Shown one piece after another: positions 32,601 to 56,600 of a stretch of DNA of 64,000 nt. Below the pieces are notes generated by a model that made no database searches, was not told the DNA's origin, and saw only the letters and a program-made list of their open reading frames with translations. Each line of letters begins with the position of its first letter. Within the stretch, counting starts at the first letter, position 1. Origin of the DNA: Haliotis rubra. Its lineage: Eukaryota. The DNA is taken from contig NW_025764955.1 of assembly GCF_003918875.1 (NCBI RefSeq), positions 124,001 to 188,000 on the forward strand. The letters run 5' to 3'. A program made the position numbers and the translations under genes.

Positions 32601-35600
32601 TGTGCTATTTGAGGTTAAAAGTGTTTCAGTCTCAAATGATATGCCTTTGGATATAGTCCCAAGTATCGTTTGCTTCGCTGATGAGGTGAATATCCCTCAG
32701 TGCTGTTAAACAATATTTGCTTTCTCTACTGACAGCAATGTGATGATTTTTGTCACTGCAGAGAAAGGTGCATAAACGAATCCACGACGTGCAACAGAAC
32801 ATATCTCACTACCTGCAGTGTGTGCATATGTATCCCGCGAAAGGTAAAACTTGCCAGTAAAGAGGATCCTGCTCTCACAATGAAAAGAATGTGAGAGTGG
32901 TAAATTCTATTGAACGAAACGAAAAATATTTCATGCAATAATTGCAAATTTATTAAACAGGAGGTGCTTGCTAAACATTAAAAACAGTGTTTTTATGGGC
33001 GTAACACCGTGACCATTTTTCTTGTATTTACACGTACAATAAAATATCTCATATTCCACTATATTGACCTGTTGTATAGGTGACGCTAACCGAACCCAGT
33101 GTGTACAGGAACTCCGGGAGATTCTACAGGCACTTCACCCAGAGGACTACAAGGAGTTCGTCAACTCGGTTCTTAACGTGTCTTGTGGAGCAGCGGAGTC
33201 CAACTGTTCGGTGGAAAGACTCGTCTTCATAGATATTGTCGCCAGAATTGCTGATGAAATATCTCAAGAACTTATCGTCAAACATGTTCTCAACAGGACA
33301 GACCCCAACGAAGAGGAACTACGACATGTGTTTATACACTGCATTGCAATAGCGAAGCCGATCATGGTTGGTACATGTGCATATAACCGTGAATGGTTAT
33401 ATAGAACATATGGAGTATAGAAGAAACTTGACCTCAAAAAGTAGTGTTGATCAAGCAATGATACTAATGTTAACAACTGAATTTATCATAGGTCATGTAA
33501 TCTGTGTATTGCTTATAGATGTGTGTAATTACTATTTCTAGCCAATAAATGATATATTTCCACATTTTAGCAAGTCGTCCGTGCTGTAGAGGGTTACTGC
33601 TTTGGTGTTGGAGATCAGCATCATGGTATGTCATTGAAACATTGACAGTAAGCAGCTGTATATTACTTATTATAAGAAAAAGCAATTCGTTCATATATTA
33701 CACTGTAAGTTCTTTCTTTCTTGGGGTATGTATCAATCTTTTTATTAACAATGTTTCTTATGTATGTTTGACAGGTTCAATAAATCTGACAGTGGTACAA
33801 ACTCGGGCGTGTTTGGCTGTGGGATCTCTTGCTAGGAACCTTCATCTCTACTCGAATTCTTCAGATGCTGTCAGACTGGTTGAGAAGATCGAGTCATGGA
33901 TCACTAAACACGAAATGCGTAAAGATACCATCTCTCATTGTTGTACTCTGAATTATACACTGGCATCAATATTTTACAAAATACTGATAGTTTAAGATAT
34001 ATAAGATGCGTCTGTTATTTTTGTGTTTTGATGCTAGTACACAGGACATCTTGATAATAATGTTTATTGTTCGATCAGCCATAACATGTCAAAGAGTTTA
34101 AAGGAGAAAAATCTTTCGCTGCAGTTTTAAACCATAATGTACACACGTCAGGGTAATTTATGCCATGAAGCCATGTGTCTATGTCTTGCAGTATTTCCGG
34201 CTTTCTATCAAAAGGCTAACAGACCGTCTTATAACAGGAATACAGTTTAAACCACCTCAAATAAACTGGGACCTATGATACACAGCAATATTTAAAAGTG
34301 TGTGTTTTTCGTTCATAGATCCTCACTACAGGCACAAAAGGTCAGTCCGTATTGAAAAGGATAGTCACTACATTATCTCCAAGAAGATACTGCTTCACAG
34401 CCTTGGAAATGCTGGTCATCCACAATCACTCAACAGAATTATCTCCCTTACTTCACCTGGACACGGTCACCACGACTGGAGACGTGCGGCAGTTGAGGCA
34501 CTAAGGCACTATCGGTGTAACCAGGTACAAAGACAACAAAGAAATATATCTTAAAGTTCATGTTTTGTAAAGACAGAGAGCAGGTTTTACAAATATAACA
34601 ATGTCCATAATACTCTGAAAAGTATTTTAGTCATTAATTATGAGCATATAAACCGTATAATATTAAATGTTTCGATACAGATTCTTGTACCGTTGTCAAG
34701 CAGGAGAATCTGTATCGAAAGGGCGCACTCAAGAAATAAGTTATAACCCGTAGGTTACATATATACATTGCTATGTATATACCTTGTCACTTTGTCATTA
34801 CTGAATTTATCAAACAAATTAAAATAACTATAATTTATGTTAGGATCCACTAGATAACCTCAAAGCCTTAAGAAGTATAGAATAAATTAAATTATTCCTG
34901 ATTTTTGATTGATCCTTGTCAGTCAGTTGCTCAGTTGTAATCATTTATACACAACACGGCACGACTTGTGAATTTTGATAACATTTTAACAGAGTGCGGG
35001 AGCATTGCTTGAGAGTGCTCTTCGAGATGCCAAGCAGAGTGTTAGACGAGCAGCCAGATACCTGTACCTCAAGCATCCAAGGGCAAACAACTTAACACAT
35101 GAACAACAGAACATTATTCTGAGGTACTGGATACTGCAAAGAACGTACAACGAAATATATTATTATAGACTAATAACGTGATTTCATGTGCAAAGCATTT
35201 CGACAACCACATTTTCATTCAATCGAAAAGACTGATACAACAATTACTTCAAAACAGTTTCTGTGAATCATTTTCTTTGCCACAATTATATTGAACACGT
35301 TCATCTTGACGACCTAAGGGTAATTCCGGAAATGCGCATTTTGCTTTTTGTTTCAGCCACTCTTACGCATGGCCAGTAATTGCCAGAATGAGGAGAAGCG
35401 TGTTAGATGCTGTTCTCTTCCAGTTTAGATTAGCTTTGCCTCACGTGGACTGGAAAAAAGAGATAGGGAACAGTGCCATTGGGGCCAGTTTTGGTGTCCT
35501 CTTTGAAAACGAAATGTCAGCAGTTTTCCGTAAGTTCTGTAAACAGCAAGCAGCTGATAATAAGTTAAATCCTGGTTCCAGTTATCAAACAGCACTTGAG

Positions 35601-38600
35601 AAAGGCCATCAAGAAAATAAGTTGACTGGCGTTATCTACACTCTCTATCGTAAATGACTTTTAATCAGCAAAGGAATTGCACTTTTGGCATTTTGGGGTA
35701 AGCCCAGGTAATTCACTTGCGCTATGTATTACGTTTTTCTTGTCTAGTAGTTCGACCAATAACCATTTTGCCTTGTTTGAAACAACTTCTCTGTCACTGA
35801 AATCAATGCTTAAAAAACTATATTTACAATAAATAAACTTTGTGTAATGTGTTTTGTTTTTCACTATAGTTTGTAATCTACTTTTAGGACCTCTAAGCGG
35901 CTTTGTGGATATCGATATCCATGACAAATTATGGGCTGAGGCACACATTAGTATCGTTGGCATTCACATCGACATCCTCCTCATTGAACTATGTTACAAG
36001 GGCAGACTGGAGTACAATGCAAACAAATTTAAGGTAAGTACCAAGTCTCTTCTTCTCTTCCATGTAGTACTTAGACCTCGCAATGTAACAAGCATATGAT
36101 AATACCTCATATAACTATTTTCCACTTCAGGACATCAGCGTTGGGTTAGTCCAGAACATTGCAGGAGCCTTCGATGACATGGCCAAAGAGATCATGAAGC
36201 CCATGACTGATGAAACCACCAGGATGACCTCTCAGTTTTTGGAACCAGATGGCAAAACAACGAAGAGCAACTTTGAGCCTCTTGCAAAAGCAGTAAAAGA
36301 TCTCCCAGTGAAAACCGATGCGGCCCTCTCCTCGGTTTTGGAACTAAATACGCTGACTCAGCAGTTTCAGAGTATGCCCTGGGTGACTCGTCTTCAGCAA
36401 GCCGTGGACCATGCGCAAGCATTGGTAGAAGGAATAAACACTGATGCCCTCAATTTCTACAAGGTAACCAGGTATCTCTATGTCGCAGTAATATATTAAT
36501 ACAACTTGTTTGTTACCTGCATTTGTTAGGCTAACAGAAATAGAATAATTTCATACTTTGTTTCACAGACAGCAGTCATATAGATCGATTATTGTGCAAA
36601 TAAAGTGCGAAACAAACAAAACGTCAATTTTCTAGGTCAACAGGCACCTGATAAAGTTAAAATGGTTCATGCTACATGTTTCCTATGTGGAAGATTTTGG
36701 GCCTGAGAGTGAAGACAGGGAAGAAGATGCTCGTGTTTTGAAATGTAGCCAAAACACTTCTCATGTATTAGTTTCGAAATTACAGAAAATATCTGATGGA
36801 AGTATCGTGGCCTTGCCGGTGGGAGAAAAGGAAATAATGGACAGTGTCAACACAGCAAGCAGCCTGATGGGCAAAATAGCCAAATTTCCAAAGCAAGCGT
36901 TCTCACACTTAGAAAAAGCCAAACTTGGGTAAATATGAATAATTTCAAGGACATTATTTATCATAATGAAATCTGAATGTGTTAATAGGATATCAATTCA
37001 GACACCAGGTGTCAACAAACCCGAACATCTACAAATCGTCTTGTTTGACATATCCAATGTTTTTTTAAAGAATATATATTCTGGCAAATTTATTTCTGAA
37101 GTTTCGTTTGTTTTTCCGCGAATCTGTGACCTACGTTTAAAGACATTACTAATTGACAAATATACATTTCAGATTCCAGCTTGGAATGGGTCGAATATTC
37201 TCAGCAAATTCTGTCATCAGGAAAGCAACTTCTTTGCTGAAAGGTAACTTCATTCTTTAAAATGTGTAATCATAAATTAAAAGTCATGGTGGTTCTAGAG
37301 TTGGGAATTTCGAATAATGAACCTATGTTTATATTTACAGTTAATATATTATTCATCGTATAAGTGTTTTTGTCAGTGAAAATCGTCACAGAAAATGCAT
37401 GGAATAAAGTTCCCAAAAAGAAAAGGACAAGCAGGGAATCACCATTATAAAATACTCTTAAAAAGTAGGGAAACATTTTTTATAATTTACGATTGAAATA
37501 TATCGGAGTCACTCAATGTTGATATGCAAATAATGAATGTTTAGGGTGCATTGCTATTTGCACTTCCTTATGGCCTTAATTGTTTGCACAGTAATCGCTC
37601 TAAAAAAAATATTGGTATATGTCGTGGAATTTGTATGTGTACGATTTTCATTTTCAAACATGTGTGATGCAAGAGAGAGAGAGAGAGAGTCTTTATTTCC
37701 TCCAGTAGTTACCGAAGATTACAAACAAAAACATCATATTATATTAGAACACGTACATGAATATTAATAATTGGATGTTTAGAGATATATGTACAGAAAT
37801 TTATGACATGAAGAGAATCATTCTGTATAACAGTTCACAAGGTGTGGTTTCAGGTCATATACATACAAAGAAAAGCGTAACAGTATCGTTTCCCATAGTG
37901 TTGAATCTATAGAGTTATAAAAGTCGTTTTCTGCTCCGAAGAGAAATGACAACATATCTTGTTCACCTTGCATTTCAAATATTACGTAAGTTTCAACATC
38001 AAGTTTATCAATTAAGTATGCAAAGAAATCATTTCGTTGTTGTATTAGGTTTTCACAGTGGAGAAGTATGTGGAAATCATAGTCAAATGTTTGTTTATTA
38101 CAAAGAGCACACTCTTTCGAGATTTTACCTCTTGATAATATTTTGACACAAAATTGCAAGGAATATTTATAATTAGGGTGTTTATATGCCAGTTGCCAGA
38201 AAGTATGGTAAGAGAGTGTAGTATGAGTTGTTGCATAAAATGACATGCTTGAACGATAGAGAGTTTGTGATCGCCATAATTGTTCTTCATAACTATGTAC
38301 AGTAGCATTTACAATTCTTCTCCATACCCGTTTTGGAGGAACTATGCCTTGAGCAATATAATTGTCAACAAATGTATTTAGATTATACTTTTCAGATATT
38401 GATAAAAGATCATCACAGATGTTGTTCGATTTTACTGAAGTTGCAATAGCAGCACAAAAGATATGTTTTGCAAAGTTGTTACACTCAGTGTTACATAGTC
38501 GCCCAAGAAATAGTAGTTTACATTTATCGATATACCCAGTTAGTGACCATAATCCAAAAATTTGCAATGGTAGATATTGATGATGACCTCTTATCAAGAC

Positions 38601-41600
38601 CTTGCACAAGACGAGCAAAGTATCTTTGTGTTTGTTCAAAGGTGTCAGCCTGTTGGACTTTGATGTTTGGTAATACTTCACAGCCATAGAGACTAGTTTT
38701 AAGAATCATTCTGAGCCATATTTTAACACAAGTGATTGGATGTAGGTCAGAATCATTCAGTCCAATAGATCTAAGTGAGTTTACATTCTGTCTTGCTTTC
38801 TGACAATACTTTTCACTTCTAGTTTTTGTTGAGAGGTTACTTGTAAAGAGTACACCCCCATATACGGTAGATTCTGATAAGGGGATTGGGATGTTACCAA
38901 TGCTACAGTGGACGTTTACATCATAGCCTTTTCTTTTGCTAAAAACGATGATGGTACTTTGTGATGGGTTATATGTTAGACGCCATTTAGAAGCGTATGA
39001 AGAGACAATATCCAGTGATACCTGTACGCCATTAGGGGATGTGCTTATGAGTGTAGTATCGTCAGCAAGCAAGACAGCTGGAACGTCCATACCAAAGACA
39101 CGGATACCAAAGCCAGCTTCTCTTAAAGATGTAATTAGGTCATTAATAAAAATGAGAAAAAACCAAGAGGATATAACCCTCCCTTGTCCAACACCTTGTT
39201 TGACCAAGTACATATCTGACCGCTCGCCGAGGTATGCAACAAATGATTGGCTATTGGTGTAACAGTGATGTAACAGTTTCCATGTATTACCTCTAATACC
39301 AAGTTCATGAAGCTTATAGAATAAACCATCATGCCAAATTCTGTCGAATGCTTTTGCATTGTCGAGAAAGGCTGTAAAGACAGGGGAATCTCTATGGTTA
39401 TAGTATTGTATACTCTCCATGAGAGTAAACACAGACATTATGGCTCCATGCTCTTTTCGAAATTATTGGTATATGTCGTGGAATTTGTATGTGTACGATT
39501 TTCATTTTCAAACATGTGTGATGCAAGATGATTCCAAAATTAATGAACTACAGTGATTTATCGACCTTCCTCAAAACTGTCAAAATTAACAATGTCACTC
39601 CATGTAGTGCACGTGCATCCCTTGCGCTGTGTTTTAGGGTTATGACAATGAAAAGTGATGGTGCGTTCATACGATGTCTGTCGTTGAAAAGATTATACTT
39701 CCTATCTACATTGAAAGTTCAGGCTCACCTACTTTTTCAAGAGCATAAATCAGGATGATGATACATTGTTGAAGGGCAAAGCTCATCCTGGATGTCAACA
39801 GGAAGCGAGATTACACACGTCATATCTTCAGTAAAAAGCATTTTGTCATCTGGGTTCAAAAGACACAGGAGAAGGAAGAGAACACCGTCACCGTTTGATC
39901 AGGTTAATGATCTCCTCGACAAAGTGGTACGTACAAACTCACTGTATCTTTAACTGAATCATTCAACAGTGGTAAAACGGTCAACTGACAAGTGTATATA
40001 TTCGTATGAGGATGTTTGGAAACTGAAATGCAGAAACTAACCCAGAAATCGGCTAGTACAGATTTAAAAGTTTAAATACAATTTAATAAATGACATAGAT
40101 GGTCAATAATTATCAATGAACAGACCATATCAAAACACAGTTTTAGGTTTACAATTGCAACAGACAGTATGATGGTTCAAATAACGGGCAGCAGTAACAG
40201 GCCCCTATTTACTATCGAATGTTGGTATAATTTGATTAAAGAATTCTGCGAATAACATCAGCAGTAATATCACTCTAAATTGAAGTCATATATACAGGGT
40301 GATTCATCAGATGAAATATACCGGAAAGTTGAGACACAGACCAATCAAGTCATTTCACATCTGGAATCCCTGAGGGACAAAGAACCGCAAGCGTTCCAAG
40401 AAGGACTTGGCCATCAAAAACTCACCACTGAAACAATACAAAAGAACTTCCAATTGTTTCAAGAGGCGTAAGTAGCACCTCACTGGTTTACACAAACCTA
40501 TATAATTTTTTTAAACGATATTTGATCCTCGAGATACTTAAAACCTGGGTTATTTCGTCTCTGCCAGATGTCCTCGTTTTCATTTGGTCAACTTTATGAG
40601 CAGCTTGAAGGGCATGGTTTCATTCCATAACACCAAGAACATGAAGGCGATCACATTAGGAGATGCCTTCTTTTGCCAAGATATCTTATCTCTAGATTTC
40701 GGAAAGTAGCACGTTCGCTGGATATTAATGAAAACCAAAACTTCATTCTTATGGATATATGATTAAATTTGTTGGAAAACATATTTTATTGCTTATCAGC
40801 TGCCCAGTTTCCATTCCTTATGGCCAATACACTTCAACCAGCCTGAACATCGCCTGAAGAAGGTTTGTGATCTGTAGTAGTCTCTCTATATTGACGTAAT
40901 TCTTATAGTATTGCTTTGAATGTGTACCAGAAAAGCGAAGTACATAGGCAGTACATATAACTTTCTACTTACAATCCTCAGTATAGAAAAGATAAAGTCG
41001 ACCATACAGTCACTATTTGGATCGAAGTTTCATCCCTCATTTCCTGGTCAAAGACGTCCTTCAGATTCTAGTTGCGGTAAAGGGACATATCCATCTGACA
41101 CCAGGAGCAAATATGGAACTGCAGGGATCGACCTCGTGTTGAATAAAGGATGGAAGGTATGGAGTTTTGTTACAAGGTTTAATTATTTTTACAACACATT
41201 TCTGTTCTTCAGTTTTGAAAATAAGTGTGTGTCTAGTATTTGAAGAGGGTTTAACTGAACACTGTTATAACCTATTCAATGTCTGTGTGAAATACATGCA
41301 AATACTTCGTCTTTACTGTTTTGTTGACCAACACACTCCTCCCAGCCTATGGACATTGGCCGATGGCATACATACGTCATCATTAACCAATATACAAATA
41401 TATATATGTAATTTTGACAGTATGGTAAAAAGTATTTTGTAAATGTATTGTTTTTTCGCTCGTAGAGTAACTGATGGTTACGTTCTGACTAATGAGTGGA
41501 AAAAGAAGTCGGTGAAAGGCAACCAAGCTGCATCTAGTGCCCTTGTACTGTTTTCCTGAGAGCACAGAAAATGGAACTTTAAAGCCATTCCATTTCTAAT

Positions 41601-44600
41601 CGTGTGAATTTCCATGCTGGAAACCAACACAAATATTATACTTCCAGGTATTCAAACAGTCGTAGCGGTCAAATGGTATCAACCAATTGTGTAAAGATAA
41701 GTTTCTATTTACACATTTGTGAGTATATATGGAAAGCTATTATTATATGCACTATTCCTTCACCAGGTCATAAACCCGGTAGCTGGTATAGTTCGCAAGA
41801 CTGGCGCGTCTGAGGTCACCATCAAACCGACTGATTCAGACTTCAAACAGTATGAGATTATCATAGCCAACATTAATCCCTCAGTTGGCGATGAGGATAA
41901 ACATTTTGAACAGGCACAGGTAATAGGAACATCGGGAGGCAACAACGGGTGTGACTGGCCTCACATCCATCTTGCTGTTAAGAAGAAATCCCAAGGCCCG
42001 GGTGATGACTTGTGCTTCTACATGGACCCTTCACCCTTTGTCGATACTTTGAAACTAAAACCTGTCTGGCATCAAGAATGCAAAGACTTCACATTTAAAC
42101 ACATCGGACAGGTTGCAGATCTGATATCGATGCCAAATGTCTTGTCAGAGGTCATCGGAAAGCTGAAGCGAGAAGCACTAGACTGGCTGAAAGGGTATTC
42201 TGTTAAACTGCTCAACAAAATCATTCCCCCAGATTCGGAACTAGGGAAGGCCATGAGCTTCATAAGCAGTAAGCTCGGATCTCTGTCTGACGTAACACAA
42301 CTGTTCACAGGATTAGGGTAATTACCATAATTATTCTGTGTGCGATTGCGATGAACTTTGCATAATTGTGAAAACATAATTTGTTTTCTGTCATATTATA
42401 TTCAAAAGCATTTTTCAACTTACAAACCTTTACATGTTTTCAAGTGTGAGCAATAAATCTTTGATGAATATATTTCAGGGGCCATATGAATAATTTCCTC
42501 TCAACAATAAAAGCCAATGTCAAGGGGAAGGCTTTTGGAGCATTTTCTGGAATGTTAATGGCAAATGACCGCTTGAAGAGCCGTTTTCCAAAACTGTCTC
42601 GTTTGATTGGAAACGCAACGTCATTACTGAAGAAAGTACCAATCGGGAATCTGAAAACATTTGCTACTGGTGGTCTTGGTAAACATCTTGGACGATTTGG
42701 AATTCTACCCAAAGGAGGGAGATTAGCCAGCACGTCTCTCCTGAAGACTTCCATGTTTAAAAGTAAGAACCCCCACAACGATGTCAATAAAACTCTAAAG
42801 TTTCATAATCCATAGAAATTAATATAGCAACCCTGCATATGTATGTTAGAGACCGTTTAACTCCTTGATTAAGGTAAACATTATTCATGTGTTATATGAA
42901 ATAGCATGGCTTAGTGAATACACAATATTAATGTCATTTAGAAAGTGGTAAAATGTGGACTCAACCCAACAAAAGTACTAAAATATGTACTTTCCTAAGA
43001 AAGTATAATTCCAAATATAATATATGTTGCTAGTTTCGTAGTTATTACGACTTGACTCTTCACGAATACACTTTTCATGTCATTAATATGACTTGCGTTA
43101 TCTGTGGTTGAATGGTGGAACAAGGCGGTGTACTTCGGAGGGCAAAGATACGTCGTAATTATGCACCTTGATTTGCCAGTACCACATCCTTGCTCATGAG
43201 TTTCTACCAAGGCTGTACACGCTAAGGGCTTTAATGACTTAAGGAGGTTGGATACAAAATAACAAAATGTCAAGAAATTGCTAAATTTGGTTCATTTTGT
43301 AGAAAAATGTGTCCCGAATCTAATTATGTAATAAACATAGCAAGTCACCACGGCATTTGTTTGACAAGTGGCGCCCCCTTGTGGCACCGTCTGTAAAAAA
43401 GTAATATGTCATAAAGGTTCTCTTAAAAGTAAATTGTTAACTTTTGTTATTCAATATGTGTTTTTTTATATAGATATTTCAGTATTGAAATGAAATAAAG
43501 CAGGAAAATCAATTTCCAAGGCAGTATGCAGGATTTGACACATTAACTTCTTAAAAAACAGGAATTACAAAAGAAATAGTGATTCATCAATGAAAAAAAG
43601 ATTAATATAACAAGATCTTTGTATAAAATGAATTTATATATAGTAAATTCATACTACATTAATATTCAAAAATGAAAAAAAATTATATTACCAGAGAGAA
43701 TCAACATTATCTCCAATGAAAACAGCATACCCATATTCAATTTGATAAGGGGAGATAACTCTCGCCCAGGTTTACCTCAGGATAAATGTTTGTGTGGCCA
43801 AAATATCATGAAGTATGATTAGAAGTAAGATAAAGGGAAATTACTGCGTAACATAAATACGCTCTCCTACTGTCACATCCCGTCGCATACGGTATGCGTA
43901 CAAACCACGGTACCCAACCTCTTAAACTCTTTCATCCAAAGTCAAGATGACATGAGTACATCATGTTACTAAGTATTATTCAAAACACGTTAAACTCCAA
44001 CTGGTACAACTGAGCCGCTGTCCGATGTGCCTCCTCACACTTGAGCAAATATACCCTTTTCCAAATTTCATAGTAGTTAGTCTTTAGTATGAAGTTTAAA
44101 TATCGATGTAACTTAGTTGGATTCATGTTGTCACATTTTGGTTTCAGTGTGTGAAAATTTCAAGACTGGCTTCCTGTTTGGACATGACCAGATGTGTACA
44201 GCTAATGAAGATTGTCTTGGATTCTCTTGTCACATTGATATACCGCTGAGCCGTATCAAGGGTGGGATCTCATTGAAAGTCAGGGTTCATCCTCTTGAGG
44301 CTAAGGTTGATGTTGAACTGAACGGTGAAGGAAAGATTGCTCCTAAAGGTAACGCTATGGATTTTAAATTCGCAAGTAATGGTAGACATGTTATAAATTA
44401 TGGTGACAATTGACCTGGCTTTCCTTGTGTTTGTAATTGATGGCAGAGGGACAGGATATGCCCACGTTTTCGCGAATACCAGATGTGGCCACTTTTTTAC
44501 ACTTATTGATATATCAATGCAGTTGGCCACTTTTTTACACTTATTGATATATCAATGCAGTTGATTTAGTCAGCATCTGCCTAACAAATATTTCTTATGA

Positions 44601-47600
44601 TTAGATTAATATGTTTTTCTTTCTCAAGATGTTGCCTTTATCGATTGTATTCATGCACTTATCTTATCATTGCATATATAAACTAGCATATAGATTATTT
44701 TCCCCACATAACAAAACCAAAACTAAAAAATATGCTATAGGAATTATAGAAACGAATGAAAGTTTGGCATAATGATTGATAACGTCCTTTCCACATTGTT
44801 GTATAACATATGGTAATAGTGTCTCTGTAATAGGTAACAGTGTCTCCAGGACTGGGGTTCGACTTGGACCAGTCTCATTCAGTCTCCAGAGTTCTGTTGA
44901 AATACAGAGAGGCGGACTGGTAGTCTCTCTATCTGTCAAGCCATGCTACAGATCGATGTGTCTTCATGACATCAAAATCATCAAGCACCTAGCTTTTCAT
45001 CACAGGCACAAGCGGGATATTTCTGGTACGTCGTTTTACAATGCATTTATGTTGATGGCTGTTTAGGGTAGACTAACGATACCGTTGTTATTCTTTGTTT
45101 AACGTTGTCACCGCCTGTTTTCAAATGACCGGATGCTGATCAACCTTCAGTTTTCTGGTGATCTATAGCCCGTTCTAATATTGTACTGTTGTCTCTCCTG
45201 ATATATTTGTATGATAGCGTACTAGTTTTAAATTAAGAGCTGTAATATTCTAGTAGTTTTGCTGTCCTTCGATGACAGGTTTTTACGTTATACATTTGTT
45301 GATTTGAATATGGATATCAACTGTTCTCGTCACGATATGGCTGCAATATTGCCGATGTGACGTTAAATTTTAACTCACTCACTCACTCAAATGACCAGTA
45401 CAAAACTGCCTCCAAACTGGCTTGACAAAACATATCCTGGGGACCGATTTCCTTAAAAGTCTTTGAGAATTATACATATCGACTGAATCTTAATGTACAG
45501 ATGTAGGCAATGGACAGATGTTGACACATTGTATAACGTGATATATATCTATCGGGTAATAGATGACATATGAAGTTAAATTTTGTTAAACATTCTTATT
45601 CATATTTTGATATCACACTCTTAAATGTTTAAAATGTCCCTGAGAGTTATGGCTAATTTCATCAATATCCTGAACCACCGTATTTCCAATAATATTATGG
45701 ATATATTTCAAATTCAGTTTTCTACTCACTGCCTTACAGAACACCCAAAACCTGAAACTGATCATTTTTTAGAAGCCGATCATTTCATAATGGGGCGATT
45801 AGATATTTCTGAAATAGATAATTTGGGTTGAAACTGTACTGGATAAAAAAAATGGTTCATTGGTCATGTCCTGAATGATATAAAATGCGCGTTTTAAAGA
45901 AGTGACAGAAAGTAGTCTATTTATGTGTTCCTTTAATCAATCTTAAGCCCTCCTGTCTTTATCCATACGTGTGTATTTGTAAACAGCTACTATACAGAAC
46001 GGCATTACCAGCCTGGAAAACATGGACCTATCCTCAATCACGGATCAGCTGACTAACCTCAATATCCCTGGCAAAGAGTTCGTAGGACAGATGAATGAAA
46101 TGTTGGATGGAATACGAACAAAGGTGCGACACGTGGTTTCATGAAAATTATAAGTAATGGGCGTTATGTGGAAGATATCTTAGCTTTTCAGAATGTATTT
46201 TATTGAGGAGTGAGAAATAAAGCAAATTTATATTTGGCGTATCTTTCTTAGCTTTGTGCGTCATTTTACGATAAATACATTGGATAGGACGTCACTGAAT
46301 ATAACGAAACGATGTCTTGTTGGTCACAATTTGACCCTTGGCAACCATTTATGTTGTATTTTGTTTGACGCTTCAAAGTCCTGTTCATTCATTTTGGTAC
46401 TTGTCCTGGTGTTAAGTGTATTAAACATATATTTTTACCCAGTGGAATCATGCAGTGAGAACTGCCTGATGAATGCCACGTGTTTGGCAAATTTCAAAAG
46501 CTTATATGAAAGCTGTATCTTACAGAATAGTGTGAATACCCATACAAAATGGTATTCTAATAAAAAAATTTCTTTCCAGATAACAGAAGCAAAAGCTGAC
46601 CCAGTTGGGGCTTTAACGGAGGAGATGAAAGCTGAAGATGATTATGAAGACAAGCAGGATTATCCAAATGGAAAACCCCTCTATTTTCCCTTCTTCCCAC
46701 CAGGCGCCATGACGTTCCCTTATCCAGCAGGGCCAGTTGTATTTGTCATATGTAAGTAACCCCTGAAAGAAGATTGATGATGACTGAGAAAGATTGAGAT
46801 GAGACTAGTGAAGTGAATCCTTGAAACAGCATATTTCAGATTTTGAAAAAATCAGCGATAGTGCGCGTTAATTATCAAACTTCATGGATATTAAAACATC
46901 ACAAAGTGTCATAATCAGCCTGCATCAAATATTGAATACGACTCAATAAATATTGTAGTTCGATATGTCCGCCTCAATGCTTCAACCAGCCGTCAGTCAT
47001 GAGACTTGGCTTCGGAAATGGGAAAATCTGCTATTGCATGTATTCCTCAAATATATATATGTTAATATCATTTCCAAAATAACATAAAACCAACAACAAC
47101 AACAGGATTTAATAGTGGTATATCAACACATCACTGTTTGCTCATGTGTAAGTTCAGCCGCCTCTTCGAGAATCAGTTTCCTCAACCGAACATCTAACAT
47201 TTATTTCCATTACCTTTACTCAAATAGCGATTAAACCAAGTGGTTGCAAACAAAAACAAATAATGATTGCACCCCGCATAAACACATACATAGGCATGTT
47301 AAGTGTTCACCTTATCAATCACGGAAATACATGAGTGTTTTTATCGTTTTCATGACATGAGTATTTATCAATGAAAATATGCATACTCAGACAGACATCA
47401 ACAGAGCTCCCATTGTTTTTATATTTACACAAGTCAGTAAGTTTTGAGGAACCGTATCTTTGTGCTTAACAACCCTGCAAGTATGGGTGGATTCCACCGG
47501 TGTGTGATTTTAGCGATGACGCTAAGTATATTTGTGCGCTGCGTGTCATCGTCTTGGAGGCCGTTAGATGACTCCGTAACGTTGAACAAAGATGGACGTC

Positions 47601-50600
47601 ATTGGCACCAGTATGGACGCGAAGAGCTGCTGGCGCTGAAGGAAACCGCGTTGGAGTTGAAAGGACTTAGAGACTGCTCCCGGAATGTGCATCAGACAAG
47701 GGGAATAATTCAAATTCAGGATCAAAAGTTACTAGGAAACGAGGTTAGCGGGGAGGAGTCCGCCGATGGTTCGGGCAAGCAAATCAAGACCACCTCTTCC
47801 AATTGTTCTATTATCAAACATTAGGTCTCTTGAGAATAAACTTGACGAACTTACGGCAAGCACAAAATATTTGTACGAATTCAGAGACAGTTGCATTCTC
47901 GGTTTCACGGAGACATGGCTATCACCCTCCGTGGACAGTAACACCCTCTATTTGGAAGGATTTGGTACTCCAGTTCGATTAGACAGAGATTCAGATGCTA
48001 CAGGTAAATCTGTTGGAGGAGGTGTAGGTATGTATATACTAGTAAATGAAAAGTGGTATCGTAACTATCTTGTGAGAGAAAGGATATGTTTACCAAACAT
48101 GGAACTTCTATCAGTGTCTATGCGGCCTACTTATCTACCACGTGAATTCGGCCAGATCTTTGCTGTGAGTGTCTACATACCACCCAGTGCCGATAACAAA
48201 CAAACAGCTGATGTAGTTCATAATCATGTTCAATCCCTAGAGCTGATTTGTCCTGATGCGCCGAAATTCACACTTGGAAATTTTAATGGATGTACCCTGA
48301 AGTCTGTGCTCCACACCTACGATCAGTATGTAACATGTTGAACACGGAAAGACAAGATCCTTGACTTGTGTTATGGTAACATCAAGAACGCCTACAAATC
48401 ATATAGTTAACCACCCCTAGGAGTTTCGGACCATAATTCTGTGTATTTGCTGCCCAGATATCGTCAAAAGTTAAAAACAGAGAAGGCTATTGTAATCATG
48501 GAACAGAGAATCTATTGAAACCCTACAAGGATGTTTTGCGTGTACAGATTGAGACATGCTCTATGATGCAGAACAAACATTAGAAGATATGTGTGACGTC
48601 ATTACGGATTATATAATTTTTCGTGTCAACAACATAATACCAGATAAAAAAATCCCAAAATTTTCCCAAACAACAAGCCCTGGATCACAAAAGAAATGAA
48701 ATCTTTAATAAACGAAAAGAAACGAGCATACATGAAGAAAGATAGAATAAAACTCAAATGCATACAGAAGGACATCTTAAAGCTCGTGACTGTAAACTAG
48801 CATACAAAGAGAAAGTTGAGAGACAGTTTCAGCAAAGCTATCGGCAACAAGCCTGGCAAGGCGTGAACACGATGATTGGCAAGAGCAGGCGACCGCAGAC
48901 AACCAACGCTGGGGATAATATAACCTTTGCTGAGGACCTCAACAATTTCTACAGCCGCTTTGATTGTCACGACTTTACCAATGAGAGAGCTCAAGCTAGT
49001 GAAGCCGTACAGGATAGTGAAAGTCATATCCATATATCAGAAGCTGACTTCATTCAAAGCTTCTCCAGAATTAACATCAGAAAAGCCAAAGGACCTGAAA
49101 ACCTTGACGGCATTGTGTTGAAGGAGTGCAGACTTCAACTGTGTACAGTTTTCACTAGATTGTTTCAATTCTCAGTGAATACACACATTATTCCTTTGGT
49201 CTGGAAAACATCAGAAATTGTACCAGTTCCTAAAAGGACACATCCTAAAGAGCTCAACGACTACAGGCCAGTTGCTCTCACATCTATAGCAATGAAGTCG
49301 CTGGAACGCATCTTGTTGAGACATCTCCGTCAGGAAGTTGCCGACATACTGGACAGTTCGCCTACAGGTCAAGGAGAGGAGTTGTTGATGCCACACTGTC
49401 ACTCCTTAATAATGTCTATAAACATCTAGAGACACCTAAGTCATACATCAGGATCCTCTTCGTTGACTTTTCATCTGCGTTCAACACTATCCAGCCATAT
49501 ATCATGATACAGAAACTGTTAGACATGGACGTTAACTCATACCTCATCAAGTGGATCGAAAACTTTCTTGTGGACAGACAGTAGTACGTGAAAATTAACG
49601 GGGCTGTATCGAATAAACGGACCACCAACACTGGTGCACCACAAGGCTGTGTAAGATCTCCTGTTCTTTTCACCCTCTACACTAATGATTGTGCAAGCTC
49701 GAATTTAACCTGTTCACCTGTAAAGTTCGCAGATGATGCAGCAATTGTCAGCAAACTGAACGACACTGATTCTGAAGAACTGTATAAAGAGGACATTACT
49801 CATTTTACGACTTGGTGTGCAGAAAACCACTTACTCGTAAATGTCACTAAAACAAAAGAACTGATAATTTACTTTCGGAGTAAACCCACAGAAATGCTTC
49901 CAGTGATAATCAACGGTGAATGTGTTGAGACAGTGTCGGAGTATAAGTATCTGGGAACCTTCATTGACTCTAAGCTGAACTTGAACTCTAACACTGAAGC
50001 CCTATACAAAACGTGTTAAGATCTCTTAATGTTAACCCATCTGTGATGTCATCTTTTTATGTAGCATTTATTCAGAGTATTTTAACATTTTCCTTCCATT
50101 GTTGGTACGGGTCTCTCTCAGTTCATTTCAAATAAAAAATAGACAAAATTGTTAACACTGTAAGTAAAATCGTTGGAGTCAGATTTGAATGTTTATCATC
50201 AATATATGAGCGGCAAATCGTGAATCAAGCTGTCAAAATGATATATCTGACCGTACTCACTCCTTAAATTCGGAAAACAACCTCCTCCCTTCAGGCCGCC
50301 GCTACAAATTAAAGTTCCAATTGTGAAAACTAAGAGAGCCCGTACATCCTTTATTCCAAGTACCATATCTCTCTTAAGCAAATGTGAAGATACCTAAATC
50401 AAAGAATTTATGTAAATATGTTTGGTATCTCTCTAATGTGTCAGTAGCACTGCTGATGTAACACAAATTCCTGAAAAGGCATTAAAGTATTATTCTATTC
50501 TATTCTTTTCTACTCTATTCTATTCTAAATCATCTCACGGGTATCAGATCAACCATTAATTGAACACCAAATTAGGTGAAGGTCACAAAAGATCGGATTG

Positions 50601-53600
50601 TCAAATTGGCTCACACTTTCCTAATGTGTTTAACTCAAACACCGATCACCTTTGACAAGTGTCCATTTTTATCCCCCAGGCATATAATGCGGGGAACGAT
50701 AGTCAACGCCTCGTTCTTATCTGTCAATATTTCCGTTCAATATTTTCAACGAAATTCGGTAATATGTTTCAAACAGAACCTAAAGTGGTGCTTTTTGGTA
50801 CTCACGGATTTTTTGCAATTTTATTTATTTTGATTTCCATTAAAACAATTTGGACTTGGTTTCCAAAGGAGGGGTGGATTTCCTTCCGGGGCACAACTTG
50901 AAAAGCATGAAAGATTTTTCATCCCAACCTGGTACATGTATTAACCATGGTCGGAAGTAGTGCATTTTGCTATTTCGCTATTTTCCCTGTTTCCATTGAA
51001 ACAAGTTAAATTTTCGGAGCACAACTCGAAAACCGTTCAATATCTTTTATCAAAACTTGCCACATATATCAAACAGATCCTTAGCAGTGCCTTCTGCTAT
51101 TTGCAGAATTTAAACATTTATATTTTTCTTTCTATTCCAGCATGCTACATGCTGTAACCAATGACGCCTTTTCTTATTTAGGAATTTTAAGAAAATATAT
51201 TTGTTTCCTGTTTCCATGGCACCAAATTTACTTTGATTCTGTTCACAGTGATGTGTTTGGCTGAACCATATCTCTAAAACTAATAGGTATTCTTTCATCA
51301 ACCTGTGTGCACACAAAGGTCTGGTTGTGAAATGGTGCCTTTGTGCTACTTTGTTCTTAAGAATTTATGTTGTGTTTGTTTCTATATGTTAGCATGTTTG
51401 ATTTTTGTTTTTGTCAGGACCATATCGCGAAAGAGTATTAAGCATTCTTTCATGACACTACACACACACAAAAGCCAGGATGTCTAATGCTGCCTTTTGG
51501 TATTAGGAATTAATCAAATTTGCATTTTCCCTGTGTACAAAGCTGCAAATCCAAATGAGACAGAAAAATCTCTCATCAAGTAGGACTTTAAGGAACTGTC
51601 AGATGATTTGTACTTTACAATTTGTTTTGATGACTCTTTTAATATGCGGAATTCTAATCCTAATAGAAATTTCGTATTACTTCCAAAGAAAAAAACACAC
51701 TTTTGTCATGTTCATATCGAGATCATTCACACACTAACATATTTGCAGATTTTAAATTCTGGCTGTATACTAGAATACACAGAATACTAGAAACATATTG
51801 TAGCAACACATATGGTTCAATGTTTTCATAGATCATGAGTTGGGTCAAGGTTATTCGACCGAAAGTGCTTTTCAACTGGCAGTTTCTTTCAGACTGTACG
51901 GAAGCGGTGGTATTACACCACCGGAAATGATTATAACATTCTTCTATTATCTGAATTAGTATGCACTTCCTTTAAGTGTCTGACATGATGATATTATGTC
52001 TAAAATGGTCATAACCGTTTTCCTTGCAGCTTTGGATGCTGGAGCAGAACTTGGGCAAGAGATTTCCGTGGATGTACAGACTGTCAAATCAACAATGTCA
52101 GTAAGTGAAATACAAAATCGTATGTAAAGATACTTAAGAGTAATGTAATGAAAAAGAGAAAAGTTCTGATTCTTTAAACTTTCAGTGAATGGGATTTAGA
52201 CAACTGGAAGCAAACTGGGTAGACATACTTCACAGTGAATGGAAATGGATATGAACTCAGGCGGTTGTTCCACTGCCTCACTTGGTTAAGTGTAACTAAA
52301 AAAATAGTTGTTCTCTGACATTATGTTACTACAAACATGGACATGAGTTCCTTGAAATAAGAATTATTTAATGTTTTGTCGTTCTGTTTTGCATTAGACA
52401 AGTATAGGTCCATTTGTTGCCGGAAAAGTCAAAGCATCGTTTGGCATATCGATCATAATTGCATCTGCTGGAATATCTCTCACTGGATGGCTGATGAAAA
52501 CAAGTTTTCCTTTCGTACTGGAGATGAACTACGCAAAAGTACCAACAGTTGCCACGTGAGTACATTTTTTAATCACTGCATTATAGCAAACGCAGATAAG
52601 GTATGGGGCATGTTCTATGCATAGTTTCTGTGGTATCAAATCGTTGACGTTTTGGTGATTATTATATTTTTCAGTGTCGGAACTTTCGAATGATGCAAGA
52701 AATAAATTTGCATTTGTAAACTGTCCAAAAGCACTCAAATACAATTTCCTTTGAAAACATCCGAAATACGGTTTATTCCTGACATACCGTGGAAGTCATT
52801 CCATTCAGCAGCCTTAGCTACCGCCTTTTTGGTCTATCAGGAGACCATATGAGTATATATATGTATGACTGGAACAGCTTAGAAAATTGGGTTACTATGC
52901 AACTAAATTATAAGATAATTCTAAACTTCATCAACGGCAGGCACGTGTCTGAAGGAATGATTTGCTAGCAGTATCACTTCACACTATTTGTTTGTGTGGT
53001 TGTTGTTTACCGTCGCACTCAGCAACAATATTCCACCTATATGGCCGCGATCTATAAATAATCTGTCTGGACCAATCCAGTGATCAGCAGCATGGACATC
53101 GATCTACGAAATTGGGATACGATGAAATGCGTCAAACAAGTCAGTGAGCCTGACCATCCGATCCCCTTGATCGCCTCTTACAACAAGTCGGCTGCTGAAA
53201 ACCACCGGATCTTTACGGGTGCACATCACAGTCTGATTTGTAGGGTAGAATCTCCATATTATTGACAGGATGTTGTGATTGGCTTATGCTTTAGGGATAA
53301 GATATAATCACTCTTGTTATGGTTCCACTTATTGGTCATAATTGTTGTGGATGATAGCATAATGGAAACAAGTCGGACAAATGTTAACAGTCCTACTGAA
53401 CATGGCCAGGACCTCCCATGGGAAGCATTTTAGTTGGAGTTAACATACATGTACTTGTTTAGCAGATCTTGAGGTAAAAAGTGGAACAACGTTCTTCCTC
53501 ACCAATTCTTGTGTGAACCATCGTGTTTTTGCAGGGTGTTGTGAAATTAGCGTCTGCTGTATGATATTTTCAAAGGTACCTGTGTTTGGACAATCCGCAT

Positions 53601-56600
53601 GCGTTTCTTGTACCCCTAATTGTTCTTCCACTATGCTGTATGTCATTGATCAGTAAGTTGCCTTTTGTTTTACTTGCGCCTATATACTATCATATAACCC
53701 ATATCATTGTGAAACGATAATAGATTCAATCTATAATTTCAGAAAAAAACTTAATGTCGAGCTTACACCACTTGAACTACGACTAAGAGCATGGGTAAAA
53801 ATACTTTTCATTATCAACATGCATTTTGACATTTGGCACTGGCGAAGCCCCACATACACTGGCACCATGTGGGAACACCAATATGATATAAACGATAACA
53901 CTCCACCAAGATTCCCCAACTGTGACCACAGGAAGAGGTCATTGTCAGGAAGCTGTTCTGTCCGGCAACTTGATGGAAGGCATCCCAGTGACACAGCATT
54001 CATCCTGGAAGTTGACAGTGGGGATGAAAACAGCCCTCTCACTCTACACTATAGTATTGGTACTTCTCGAGGTGGAAGAGATGTGAAGTCACTGGTGGAG
54101 ATGAGAGGACCCTCCTTAACATTGCCCACAGTTTCACTGCCTCATGGAGTACCTTTGTATTGGACAATAAGGGCTAGGAACACTCAAGGTATTGAGGCAA
54201 CGGCTATGTGCATGCTCCACACCTATGACAATACAGTTCCAGATGGGAGGGTAGATGCTGCCTATCAGTTTACAAGTCATAGAACGGTGATCCAAGCCAA
54301 CGTTGTCGTATTCGAAGATTCTCCACTAACACCTAATCACTCAGTTGCCGTTGGATACAGTCCTGGGGAGTTCGGAAAAGAAATTTTGGATTGGCAAATT
54401 CTGTACCTGGAAAACACAAATGAGAGAAAAGGTGTTATGTCCGAATTGAAAATGTTTGCCCCATCTAAGCCTGGAAAGTTGTCTTCTGCTCCATTTTCTA
54501 CAGCTCATGCAGATAATGATATTGAATGTGCAAGACTGTGTTTGCAGACAGGTTCAAAGTGCATTTCCTTTGACTATGAAATGCATACTCAGTCTTGTGA
54601 TCTCCAGGAAACAGTTGTCGGAGCTAAGGCGAAACTTCGTGCTGCTGCTTCCTATTTTCACTATGAAAGACTTGGAGTTGGTTACAGTGCTTTTCGGGAG
54701 TTCTCTCACTCAAACCTCGAACATGGCGCCCAGTATTTTATAAATGCAAAGATCACCAACACTCTAGGATATGTTGCCTACCTGCCATCAACTGGGACTC
54801 TAGCTGACTTTACTCCACCTGAACCTGGTCCTGTAGGAGAAGCTGCTTCAGATGTGTTGACAGCTGATGGATGTAAGGCAGCTGTGACTCAAAGATGCAT
54901 CGATGTCACCAAGGAGCTCAATCACAGGTAAAACTGCCACCTTTGCCTTCTGCACTATGACAACATAAACATGTTAAAACATCCGAACAGAATATTATTC
55001 TATTGACGTGATGTCTTTTACAGAAAAATCATTGATGGGAGTGCTGGAAGAACGGTTTTTGGAGGCAACAAACCTCTTGACGATACGAAATACACACTCG
55101 CAAACAACTATATCTCAGGTAATCTACTTAAACACACATGCCAAGTGTCGCTATGAAAATCTGACATACAATGCCTGCGGAAGACCCATTGGGTAATGAT
55201 TACATTTCCTTATGTAACTGTGGATAATTTGTTCTGTGTGGTTTGTTGTTATTTGTATTACTGTGTTTACTTTTTACAGGAAACTGCGATGGCTTCCACG
55301 ACGACGAAAGTGGTATTTGGGGCTACACGTGGGCAGCTGGGACGTCTGTGTGTGGGTCTGATGTTGTGAAGTTCACTGATCCTCACGCTCAACTACAAAC
55401 CAGGCAAGACTGGACCTACACCGGACTGGGCAAGAATCTCCATCTGGCTGATGGTCAGTACTATATCACCTTCCAAGCTATCAACAATGTTGTACACGGA
55501 GGAGCTTTGGTTACAACAGTGTGTCACTCTACACCTGTGACAGTTGACACGACACAGCCCGTAGTACATGAGGTAGGGGATTTGCTGTTTGATGAGGATT
55601 TTGATATCTTGGGCGTCTACTTCAATGTATCGGACTCTGGATCGGGTATTGCCAGGGTGGACTTTGGTCTGGGCAAAACAAAGTATGATGTATTTGTTAG
55701 ATCTTACAGCCGTCATCCCTTCCTGAACCGAGCTGACCCATACCTTGTGATAGAAGATCTTGGCTTGACACCTGGTGTCCAGGCTTGGGTGCGAATCAGA
55801 GCCGTTAATTCAGGTAAGGAGAAACTATTGACATAATAGACAGACACATTTAAAATTATTAAAATTAAACTGTAACTGTCCGTGAGACAAATATTTATAA
55901 CATGTTATTGTTTGTTATTAATAGTGGATCTCTCCACTGCAAGCCATGGTGATGTCCCGATACTCATTGACTTTACACCGCCAGTCGTTGGTAAAGTACT
56001 TGATGGGGACAAACTGCTCGAAGATGTTGAATACCAGCATAACACACAGATGATCTGTGCACAGTGGGTCGACTTCTATGATCCAGAATCTGGTATTGAC
56101 AGGTATGTGAAGTCAATTCTCAAATTCTACTTTGTCTGTGATGACACAATGTACCTGTATGCATCTCGCACCAATGTGTGAATGAAACACTTTAAACATA
56201 TGCGCATGTTTATACCATTCGCATTGACGATCTACACGAGCCCCAACACTAGCATGGTATTTCATCTGTCATAGTGATTGTTTAGGTGCTTAAGAACAAT
56301 GTAGCAATATACCTGTACTTTCAGTTATCTCTGGGGTGTTGGAACGACTGCTGGAGCTGATGACATTCTTCCATTTACAAATTTTACGCATCAAGTTAAA
56401 TCTTGGTGCAACGTCACAACTCTGCACCACAATACAACATACTATTCAACAGTTGTCGCTTTCAATGGGGCAATCAATCAGAAGGAAATTCAGGCAACAT
56501 CTAATGGAGGTATGTTTGCTAATCGTACATATTGTTTTATGATGTCATAAGCCATATTTAAGGGTCCGTAAGAGGGTCTGAAAGTGCAGAAAGCTAATCA

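Follow-up and report, generated by a model that had tools for sequence, protein, structure and literature searches.

The 64,000-nucleotide stretch of Haliotis rubra DNA analyzed here (the window; contig NW_025764955.1 of assembly GCF_003918875.1, positions 124,001 to 188,000 of the forward strand, renumbered from its first base) contains the greater part of one very large multi-exon gene on the plus strand, which continues beyond base 64000 and encodes a giant protein whose modelled head resembles the large lipid transfer proteins (LLTPs). We propose that this precursor is probably processed by furin-type proprotein convertases at exposed multibasic loops, and that three of the five candidate cuts (sites 1, 2 and 5) are ancestral. 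Cleavage, the enzyme responsible and the fate of the fragments are what we infer from four features, namely that the protein is predicted to be secreted, that it carries the furin consensus, that three of the positions are kept among lineages only 25–40% identical overall, and that the motifs fall in loops modelled as flexible.

As laid out in the original prediction, five basic motifs are present in frame, each in a stop-free exon stretch colinear with a hidden Markov model (HMM) of the N-terminal regions of eight homologous giant proteins: RHKR followed by SV at 34330–34341 (site 1), RMRR followed by SV at 35385–35396 (site 2), RHRRRKR followed by TP at 39861–39881 (site 3), RHKR followed by DIS at 45004–45015 (site 4) and HRKR followed by SL at 53927–53938 (site 5). 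All five had been attributed to the R-x-K/R-R consensus, an attribution that holds for sites 1 to 4 and fails at site 5, where P4 is a histidine and the motif is dibasic only. Likewise, the sequences expected at the new N-termini do follow the motifs (SVRIEK, SVLDAV and TPSPFD after sites 1 to 3, SLSGSC after site 5); behind site 4 the exon itself reads DIS, and the predicted DISATI requires that the transcript be joined to an exon near 45992, for which homology support is weak. The exons concerned, together with other parts of the gene referred to below, are the following.

8662 to 8811, plus strand: exon 1, encoding the signal peptide from the start codon onward and the first N-terminal beta-barrel strand (HMM positions 9–52, E 1.7e-8)
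34319 to 34524, plus strand: exon of site 1, in the LLTP helical domain (HMM E 1e-19; splice signals)
35357 to 35529, plus strand: exon of site 2, where the helical domain ends and a beta region follows (HMM E 4e-12)
about 39782 to 39926 (acceptor 39775 or 39782), plus strand: exon of site 3 (HMM positions 868–899, E 0.05)
40941 to 41156 and 41767 to 42268, plus strand: two M23/LECT2-like exons between sites 3 and 4 (HMM E 8e-18 and 1e-29)
about 44834 to 45025 (acceptor 44834 or 44873), plus strand: exon of site 4, the motif lying three codons before the donor (HMM positions 1387–1434, E 0.095)
45992 to 46141, plus strand: probable next exon after site 4 (weak colinear HMM match, positions 1449–1487; its translation resembles the homologues' helix there)
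about 51999 to 52124 and 52398 to 52555, plus strand: two exons of the beta-rich region before site 5 (HMM E 9e-9 over 52407–52544, tblastn E 3e-6; the upstream block by eye only)
53743 to 54928, plus strand: exon of site 5, continuing into Ig-like and PAN domains (HMM E 3e-64; PAN_1 E 1.2e-5)
55276 to 62700, plus strand: downstream FN3/Ig-like repeat exons without Rx[KR]R (tblastn to homologues E 1e-48 to 1e-158; fn3 match)

The number of motifs in the N-terminal part of the protein is beyond chance. Within an N-terminal coding sequence of approximately 1,320 amino acids (aa), made up of 4.8% Arg and 7.7% Lys, Rx[KR]R occurs as five overlapping matches at four loci compared to 0.36 expected (HRKR not being counted as a match), and none of 2,000 shuffles reached five matches, while the roughly 2,700 aa of the downstream exons contain none at all. 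Among the homologues, five of the eight examined (about 5,000 aa each) carry three to four Rx[KR]R motifs versus about 0.5 expected, and nearly all of these stand at the columns of sites 1, 2 and 5. Two further matches in the window were set aside, as RSRR at 49366 belongs to the reverse-transcriptase open reading frame (ORF) of a long interspersed nuclear element (LINE) and RARR at 30687 lies in a stretch without homology support.

A separate observation concerns histidine, which occupies P3 in three of the four Rx[KR]R loci (RHKR, RHRR, RHKR) and P4 at site 5 (HRKR). With His accounting for 3.2% of residues, the chance of at least three of four loci having it at P3 is about 1e-4. The His-containing version was found in none of the homologues, and the bias could reflect a convertase preference specific to this paralogue or a pH-sensitive site.

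The homologues on which these comparisons are based were recovered by a phmmer search with the longest open exon (59278–62700, 1,141 codons), which returned more than 1,000 relatives, including giants of 4,600–5,400 aa from Haliotis asinina and H. rubra (P0005), Ylistrum balloti (P0010), Argopecten irradians (P0047, P0152), Branchiostoma (P0050, P0157) and Saccoglossus (P0039); two more Haliotis paralogues (P0159, P0160) and the Mytilus trossulus protein P0161 came from a word search. All giant homologues are named 'uncharacterized protein', and the family is represented in molluscs, in amphioxus and in one hemichordate. The best match to the query exon among 1.8 billion representative proteins is 38% identical, and the gene appears, from sequence comparison, to be a divergent, unannotated or unrepresented paralogue of the three annotated Haliotis giants. 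Five more distant relatives from ENA metagenome assemblies (P0093, P0052, P0138, P0049, P0097) are 4,000–6,000 aa long and carry the LLTP-like head as well as the motif of site 2; the contigs encoding them are as short as 14–22 kb, so that their genes have few or no introns.

With regard to conservation in orthologues, which had been put forward as a check, sites 1, 2 and 5 recur at the same columns across gastropods and bivalves, whereas sites 3 and 4 have no counterpart. The giants of Haliotis, Ylistrum and Mytilus carry Rx[K/R]R at the aligned positions of all three conserved sites, which are thus very probably genuine convertase sites. At site 1, RKKR or RQKR followed by SI was found in the three Haliotis paralogues, RKKR followed by SV in Ylistrum and RERR followed by SL in Mytilus, and in Branchiostoma RAKR followed by AA lies a few residues upstream; the surrounding loop varies in length and sequence among species around this kept core. 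Site 2 reads RVRR, RLKR or RLRR in seven of seven mollusc and amphioxus homologues and VKK in Saccoglossus, and Rx[KR]R also occupies this column in the five metagenome relatives. Site 5 is RNRR or RSKR in Haliotis, RRKR in Ylistrum, RQRR in Mytilus and KRKR in Potamilus; in amphioxus, the aligned Branchiostoma giant has only ARR, and RR or KR is found in several Branchiostoma proteins. Throughout, the site 5 motif precedes an invariant Cys by 4–6 residues.

In the window gene only, site 5 is flanked by two cysteines (C-D-H-R-K-R-S-L-S-G-S-C, 53918–53956), the upstream one placed three residues ahead of the motif and the downstream one lying six residues past the cut; the upstream Cys is absent from the homologues. 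One may speculate that, if the two were to pair, the chains would stay covalently joined after cleavage.

The gene model, and with it the exonic position of the motifs, rests on homology and splice signals. In tblastn and HMM searches the homologues align in the same order along the window between 8.7 kb and 64 kb, the HMM map running from 8689–8820 (positions 9–52) through about 19 anchored exons to 53741–54316 (positions 1617–1815) and being followed by the large FN3/Ig exons. The translation of exon 1 consists of a hydrophobic core followed by SQG, ends at a GTAAGT donor and aligns with the signal peptides of the homologues, which points to entry of the giant protein into the secretory pathway, as expected of a convertase substrate. 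Splice acceptors were located at AG 34317–34318, 35355–35356 and 53741–53742, and donors at GT 34525, GTACGT 39927 and GTACGT 45026; the junction 33918|34319 stays in frame and reads ...KHEM-H-PHY-RHKR-SV. The exons of sites 3 and 4 give weak HMM matches, yet they stand in the correct order and keep family-invariant residues, namely a Gly and an S/P-x-W motif before site 3 and the family Cys pattern before site 4. The model is still loose at the acceptors of these two exons and for small exons in the 42.3–44.1 kb and 46.1–52.0 kb intervals. In addition, the conserved 'VGPIP...GFGAGG' block was missed by both HMM and tblastn, its divergent candidate at about 51999–52124 being picked by eye only. 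DNA contigs of a related species (90–95% identical) cover exon-sized blocks, including 39785–39935.

The protein opens with a signal peptide and an LLTP-type head; long helices lead to an M23/LECT2-like domain, which a beta-rich region follows, and the C-terminal part is made up of a PAN domain and then dozens of FN3/Ig-like domains. Pfam searches with about 35 single exons of the window mostly gave no match, and the domains emerged from the family-level profile and from structural models. Vitellogenin_N was matched in homologue P0005 (31.7 bits versus a gathering score of 24, residues 265–534), and the window stretch 34279–34551 gives a sub-threshold match to the same family (18 bits, model positions 478–527) just past site 1. 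The family profile also matches the Peptidase M23 chain 5kqb (E 5.5e-4) and, weakly, LECT2. Neither a DUF1081 nor a vWD domain was found in the giant LLTP-headed protein. The protein is predicted to be secreted and is probably membrane-anchored; an obvious transmembrane segment was not seen in the aligned Haliotis paralogues, and some other members have a transmembrane helix.

AlphaFold 2 (AF2) models were built for P0005 residues 1–1160 (mean predicted local distance difference test score, pLDDT, 61.6) and 1130–2060 (53.6) using eight-sequence alignments. Their layout consists of beta-barrel strands (26–247 by DSSP), a helical domain (280–591 by DSSP), a poorly modelled beta region, long helices (692–980), the M23-like domain (1014–1121), further helices, a beta-sandwich, a large beta-rich domain and Ig-like and PAN domains. 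Foldseek searches with the first model returned MTP (6i7s, 8e-12), lipovitellin (1lsh), apoB100 (9bd1), honeybee vitellogenin (9enr) and 9ens, all with probability 1.0; judged by its modelled fold, the head is an LLTP-like beta-barrel plus helical domain, like those of vitellogenin, apoB and MTP. The beta-rich region after the M23-like domain (about 44.1–53.9 kb of the window) in turn matched MTP (3e-7) and lipovitellin (1e-3) at very low TM-scores, a lead suggesting that the lipid-transfer module may be split by an insertion of about 700 aa made up of the long helices and the M23/LECT2-like domain.

Burial of the sites in structural models would have spoken against their use. Instead, all five positions map to low-confidence loops or linkers of these admittedly weak homologue models. 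Site 1 (residues 466–469) lies in loop 459–473 (pLDDT below 50) within the helical domain and site 2 (586–589) at its low-confidence end. The position equivalent to site 3 is at the end of helix 869–898, with adjoining loop 899–912, and that of site 4 is in the loop after strand 286–295 of the second model, the last strand of the beta-sandwich. Site 5 is placed in linker 541–555 of the second model (pLDDT below 50), between the beta-rich domain and the next one, and marks the actual boundary between head and stalk.

How these modules would be partitioned differs in part from what had been proposed. The M23-containing interval, predicted at about 536 aa, was borne out, as site 3 is separated from site 4 by about 535 HMM positions. 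Sites 1 and 2, which had been thought to separate an 'LLTP' from a 'helical' module, are only about 120 aa apart, site 1 being inside the helical domain and site 2 at its end, and so do not divide the protein in this manner. In homologue numbering, cleavage at all sites would yield chains of approximately 450, 120, 310, 535 (M23-containing) and 240 aa, followed by more than 2,650 aa within the window.

Convertase cleavage of proteins with a large lipid transfer (LLT) module is well documented, in agreement with the statement of the original prediction that vitellogenins and apolipophorins are cut at such sites. Furin cuts insect apolipophorin-II/I (apoLp-II/I) at an RX(R/K)R site near residue 720–728, in the interval from LLT motif N19 to N20, and the aligned site is cleaved in decapod apolipocrustacein; insect vitellogenins are cut at RXXR in a disordered loop between N6 and N7, the fragments staying associated (PMC1783640). 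The giant protein resembles apoLp-II/I and apolipocrustacein in being secreted, in having an N-terminal LLT module and in keeping an RX(R/K)R site across distant taxa, although cleavage is here a prediction. In those proteins, however, a single site yields two chains in one lipoprotein particle, whereas the giant family has three conserved sites, placed elsewhere (helical-domain loop at about 468, helical end at about 588 and head/stalk linker at about 1680), and runs on into about 3,400 aa of PAN/FN3/Ig domains. Compared by residue number alone, the offset between site 2 (about 588, at the helical/beta junction) and the N19–N20 site (about 720) argues against their equivalence. As in insect vitellogenins, a convertase consensus falls in a disordered loop within the LLT module of the giants, and the fold matches include honeybee vitellogenin and its cleavage product; the insect site nevertheless precedes the helical domain, at the boundary of the N-sheet, while site 1 is two-thirds of the way through it.

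A different kind of parallel is offered by LRP1, Notch (S1 cut) and the Fat cadherins, in which a very large precursor becomes a two-chain, non-covalently linked receptor through one convertase cut in an ectodomain linker. A comparable role would fall to site 5, together with a fourth site described below, the likeness being one of layout and not of sequence relationship. What is known, then, is that LLTPs are cleaved by convertases; what is new are the positions, the number of sites and their carrier, an unnamed giant family combining LLTP, M23, PAN and FN3 domains. Nothing previously known is overturned.

In the model that we favour, furin-type convertases would cut the precursor in the secretory pathway at exposed multibasic loops, with ancestral cuts in the disordered loop inside the helical domain (site 1), at the end of this domain (site 2) and in the linker between the head of about 1,650 aa and the PAN/FN3 stalk (site 5). 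By analogy with apolipophorin-II/I and the vitellogenins, and since sites 1 and 2 lie within and at the end of the LLTP helical domain, the pieces produced by these two cuts would most likely remain together. A cut at site 5 would detach the head from its stalk or yield a non-covalent two-chain form, and sites 3 and 4 would be later cuts added in variable loops.

Sites 3 and 4 deserve separate consideration. Judging from the alignment, they are lineage-specific and arose more recently, in variable loops of this abalone paralogue. In the contigs of a related species, the site 3 tract shows three substitutions, two synonymous and one Arg to Lys, giving RHRRKKR, in which R-K-K-R before Thr is intact while flanking residues differ. 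On this basis site 3 is probably used as a cleavage site; for site 4, use is uncertain.

Several observations weigh against processing as proposed. Neither site 3 nor site 4 has a counterpart in any homologue, and the excess that these two loci represent over the 0.36 expected is marginal (Poisson P about 0.05). At site 5, the window gene lacks the P4 Arg normally needed by furin. Site 2 is embedded in fairly conserved sequence, so that its basic residues could be structural. Argopecten has kept site 2 and lacks sites 1 and 5, and Saccoglossus lacks a convertase motif at all sites, which indicates that some lineages can do without cleavage. The quality of the AF2 models is low (mean pLDDT 62 and 54, eight sequences), and low confidence does not prove exposure. 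Finally, sequencing runs whose reads were checked over 39500–45499 revealed no splice joints in this interval; the two that seemed to be RNA, among runs tentatively taken as such (0.16–0.21 share of words), contained repeats only, and two others were genomic contigs of a related species.

These points bear differently on the alternatives. It seems highly improbable that a wrong gene model accounts for the motifs, which would then lie in introns, transposon ORFs or a pseudogene. The locus is indeed full of LINE fragments with long ORFs, one of which contains the RSRR noted above, and the protein collection does not include the product of this gene, the best match in it reaching the 38% already mentioned; yet all five motifs are in stretches colinear with eight homologues, canonical splice sites hold the frame, exons remain open for up to 1,141 codons and exon-sized blocks are conserved in a related species. 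A second explanation takes the conserved basic clusters as binding patches for receptors of the low-density lipoprotein receptor (LDLR) family or for glycosaminoglycans, with the protein remaining one chain. LLTPs such as apoB and the vitellogenins do bind LDLR-family receptors through basic clusters, and a binding role would suit the LLTP-like head, the conserved context of site 2, which is not a free loop, and the KK of Saccoglossus at this position, where charge is kept and the convertase motif lost. However, it is the exact R-x-[K/R]-R spacing followed by a small or acidic residue, and not mere charge, that is conserved, and the variable flanks around the fixed core of site 1 are the signature of a short linear processing motif. 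All sites are in low-confidence loops of the models, and furin has been proven to cut related LLTPs at this very motif (PMC1783640). We consider binding patches an unlikely explanation.

Less easily dismissed, and compatible with convertase processing as such, is the view that cleavage is confined to the three ancestral sites and that sites 3 and 4 arose by chance in a Lys/Arg-rich region, which would give at most four chains and not five or six. The missing homologue motifs at both positions, the Arg and Lys content of the N-terminal part, in which two extra loci are only marginally unexpected, and the weak homology support of both exons are all in line with it. On the other side, site 3 is basic in six of its seven residues and has stayed polybasic in a related species despite three substitutions, both sites fall in variable linkers beside exon ends, Branchiostoma has gained extra linker sites of its own, showing that site gain recurs in the family, and the recurrence of His at P3 (P about 1e-4) suggests that the loci concerned share a selective cause. 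We regard this restriction to three cuts as quite possible, if on balance short of probable, and retain processing at the ancestral sites, with later additions, as the preferred interpretation.

Overall, convertase cleavage, a defining maturation step of lipoproteins such as lipophorin and crustacean yolk precursors, would thereby extend to a family in which an LLTP head is joined to a very long adhesion-type stalk, with three cut positions kept since before the split of molluscs and chordates. This provides testable fragment boundaries for a first biochemistry in abalone, scallops, mussels and amphioxus, and the gains and losses of sites form a natural series in which the purpose of cleavage can be studied. 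A literature search found no described family combining LLTP with M23, PAN and FN3 domains, and a paper on the sponge aggregation factor among its results is unrelated. Going further, and with considerable doubt, the giants might constitute an undescribed bilaterian class of LLTP-headed surface or matrix proteins, in which the lipid-transfer module is split by the insertion of about 700 aa, made up of coiled helices and an inactive M23/LECT2-like domain; at least three ancient convertase cuts, plus a membrane-near fourth in some members, would produce a multi-chain head uncoupled from the FN3/Ig stalk, linker sites would be added by individual lineages, and in the present gene RH[K/R]R might be pH-tuned.

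Beyond the part of the protein covered by the window, a fourth aligned polybasic site was observed in bivalve and amphioxus members (RRKR, RKKR, RRRRR; about residue 4194 of P0010, 4234 of P0161 and 4574 of P0157). It is located in the membrane-proximal ectodomain, ahead of a cadherin-like domain, an EGF-like domain and a transmembrane helix, and is absent from the Haliotis paralogues.

As indicated above, the introns are rich in transposon remains. The long plus-strand ORFs at 46.2–50.0 kb were considered as part of the giant protein and rejected, as 49249–50016 encodes RVT_1 (E 1e-13) and the region has no counterpart in the homologues; according to its translation, 46214–50016 is a degraded LINE remnant on the plus strand, in the intron of about 46141–51999, that mimics host coding exons. 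Another intron holds a degraded LINE copy with reverse-transcriptase remnants (37818–39438, minus strand). A nearly intact non-LTR (long terminal repeat) retrotransposon is present in an early intron (23882–27660, minus strand; local GC 0.33), with adjoining ORFs of 787 and 476 aa and matches to the Exo_endo_phos endonuclease, RVT_1 (E 2e-31) and zf-RVT. Lastly, a 92-codon open stretch at 31026–31301 on the plus strand, with weak matches to HTH_23 and HTH_32 (transposase-type helix-turn-helix), is probably the intronic remnant of a DNA transposon.

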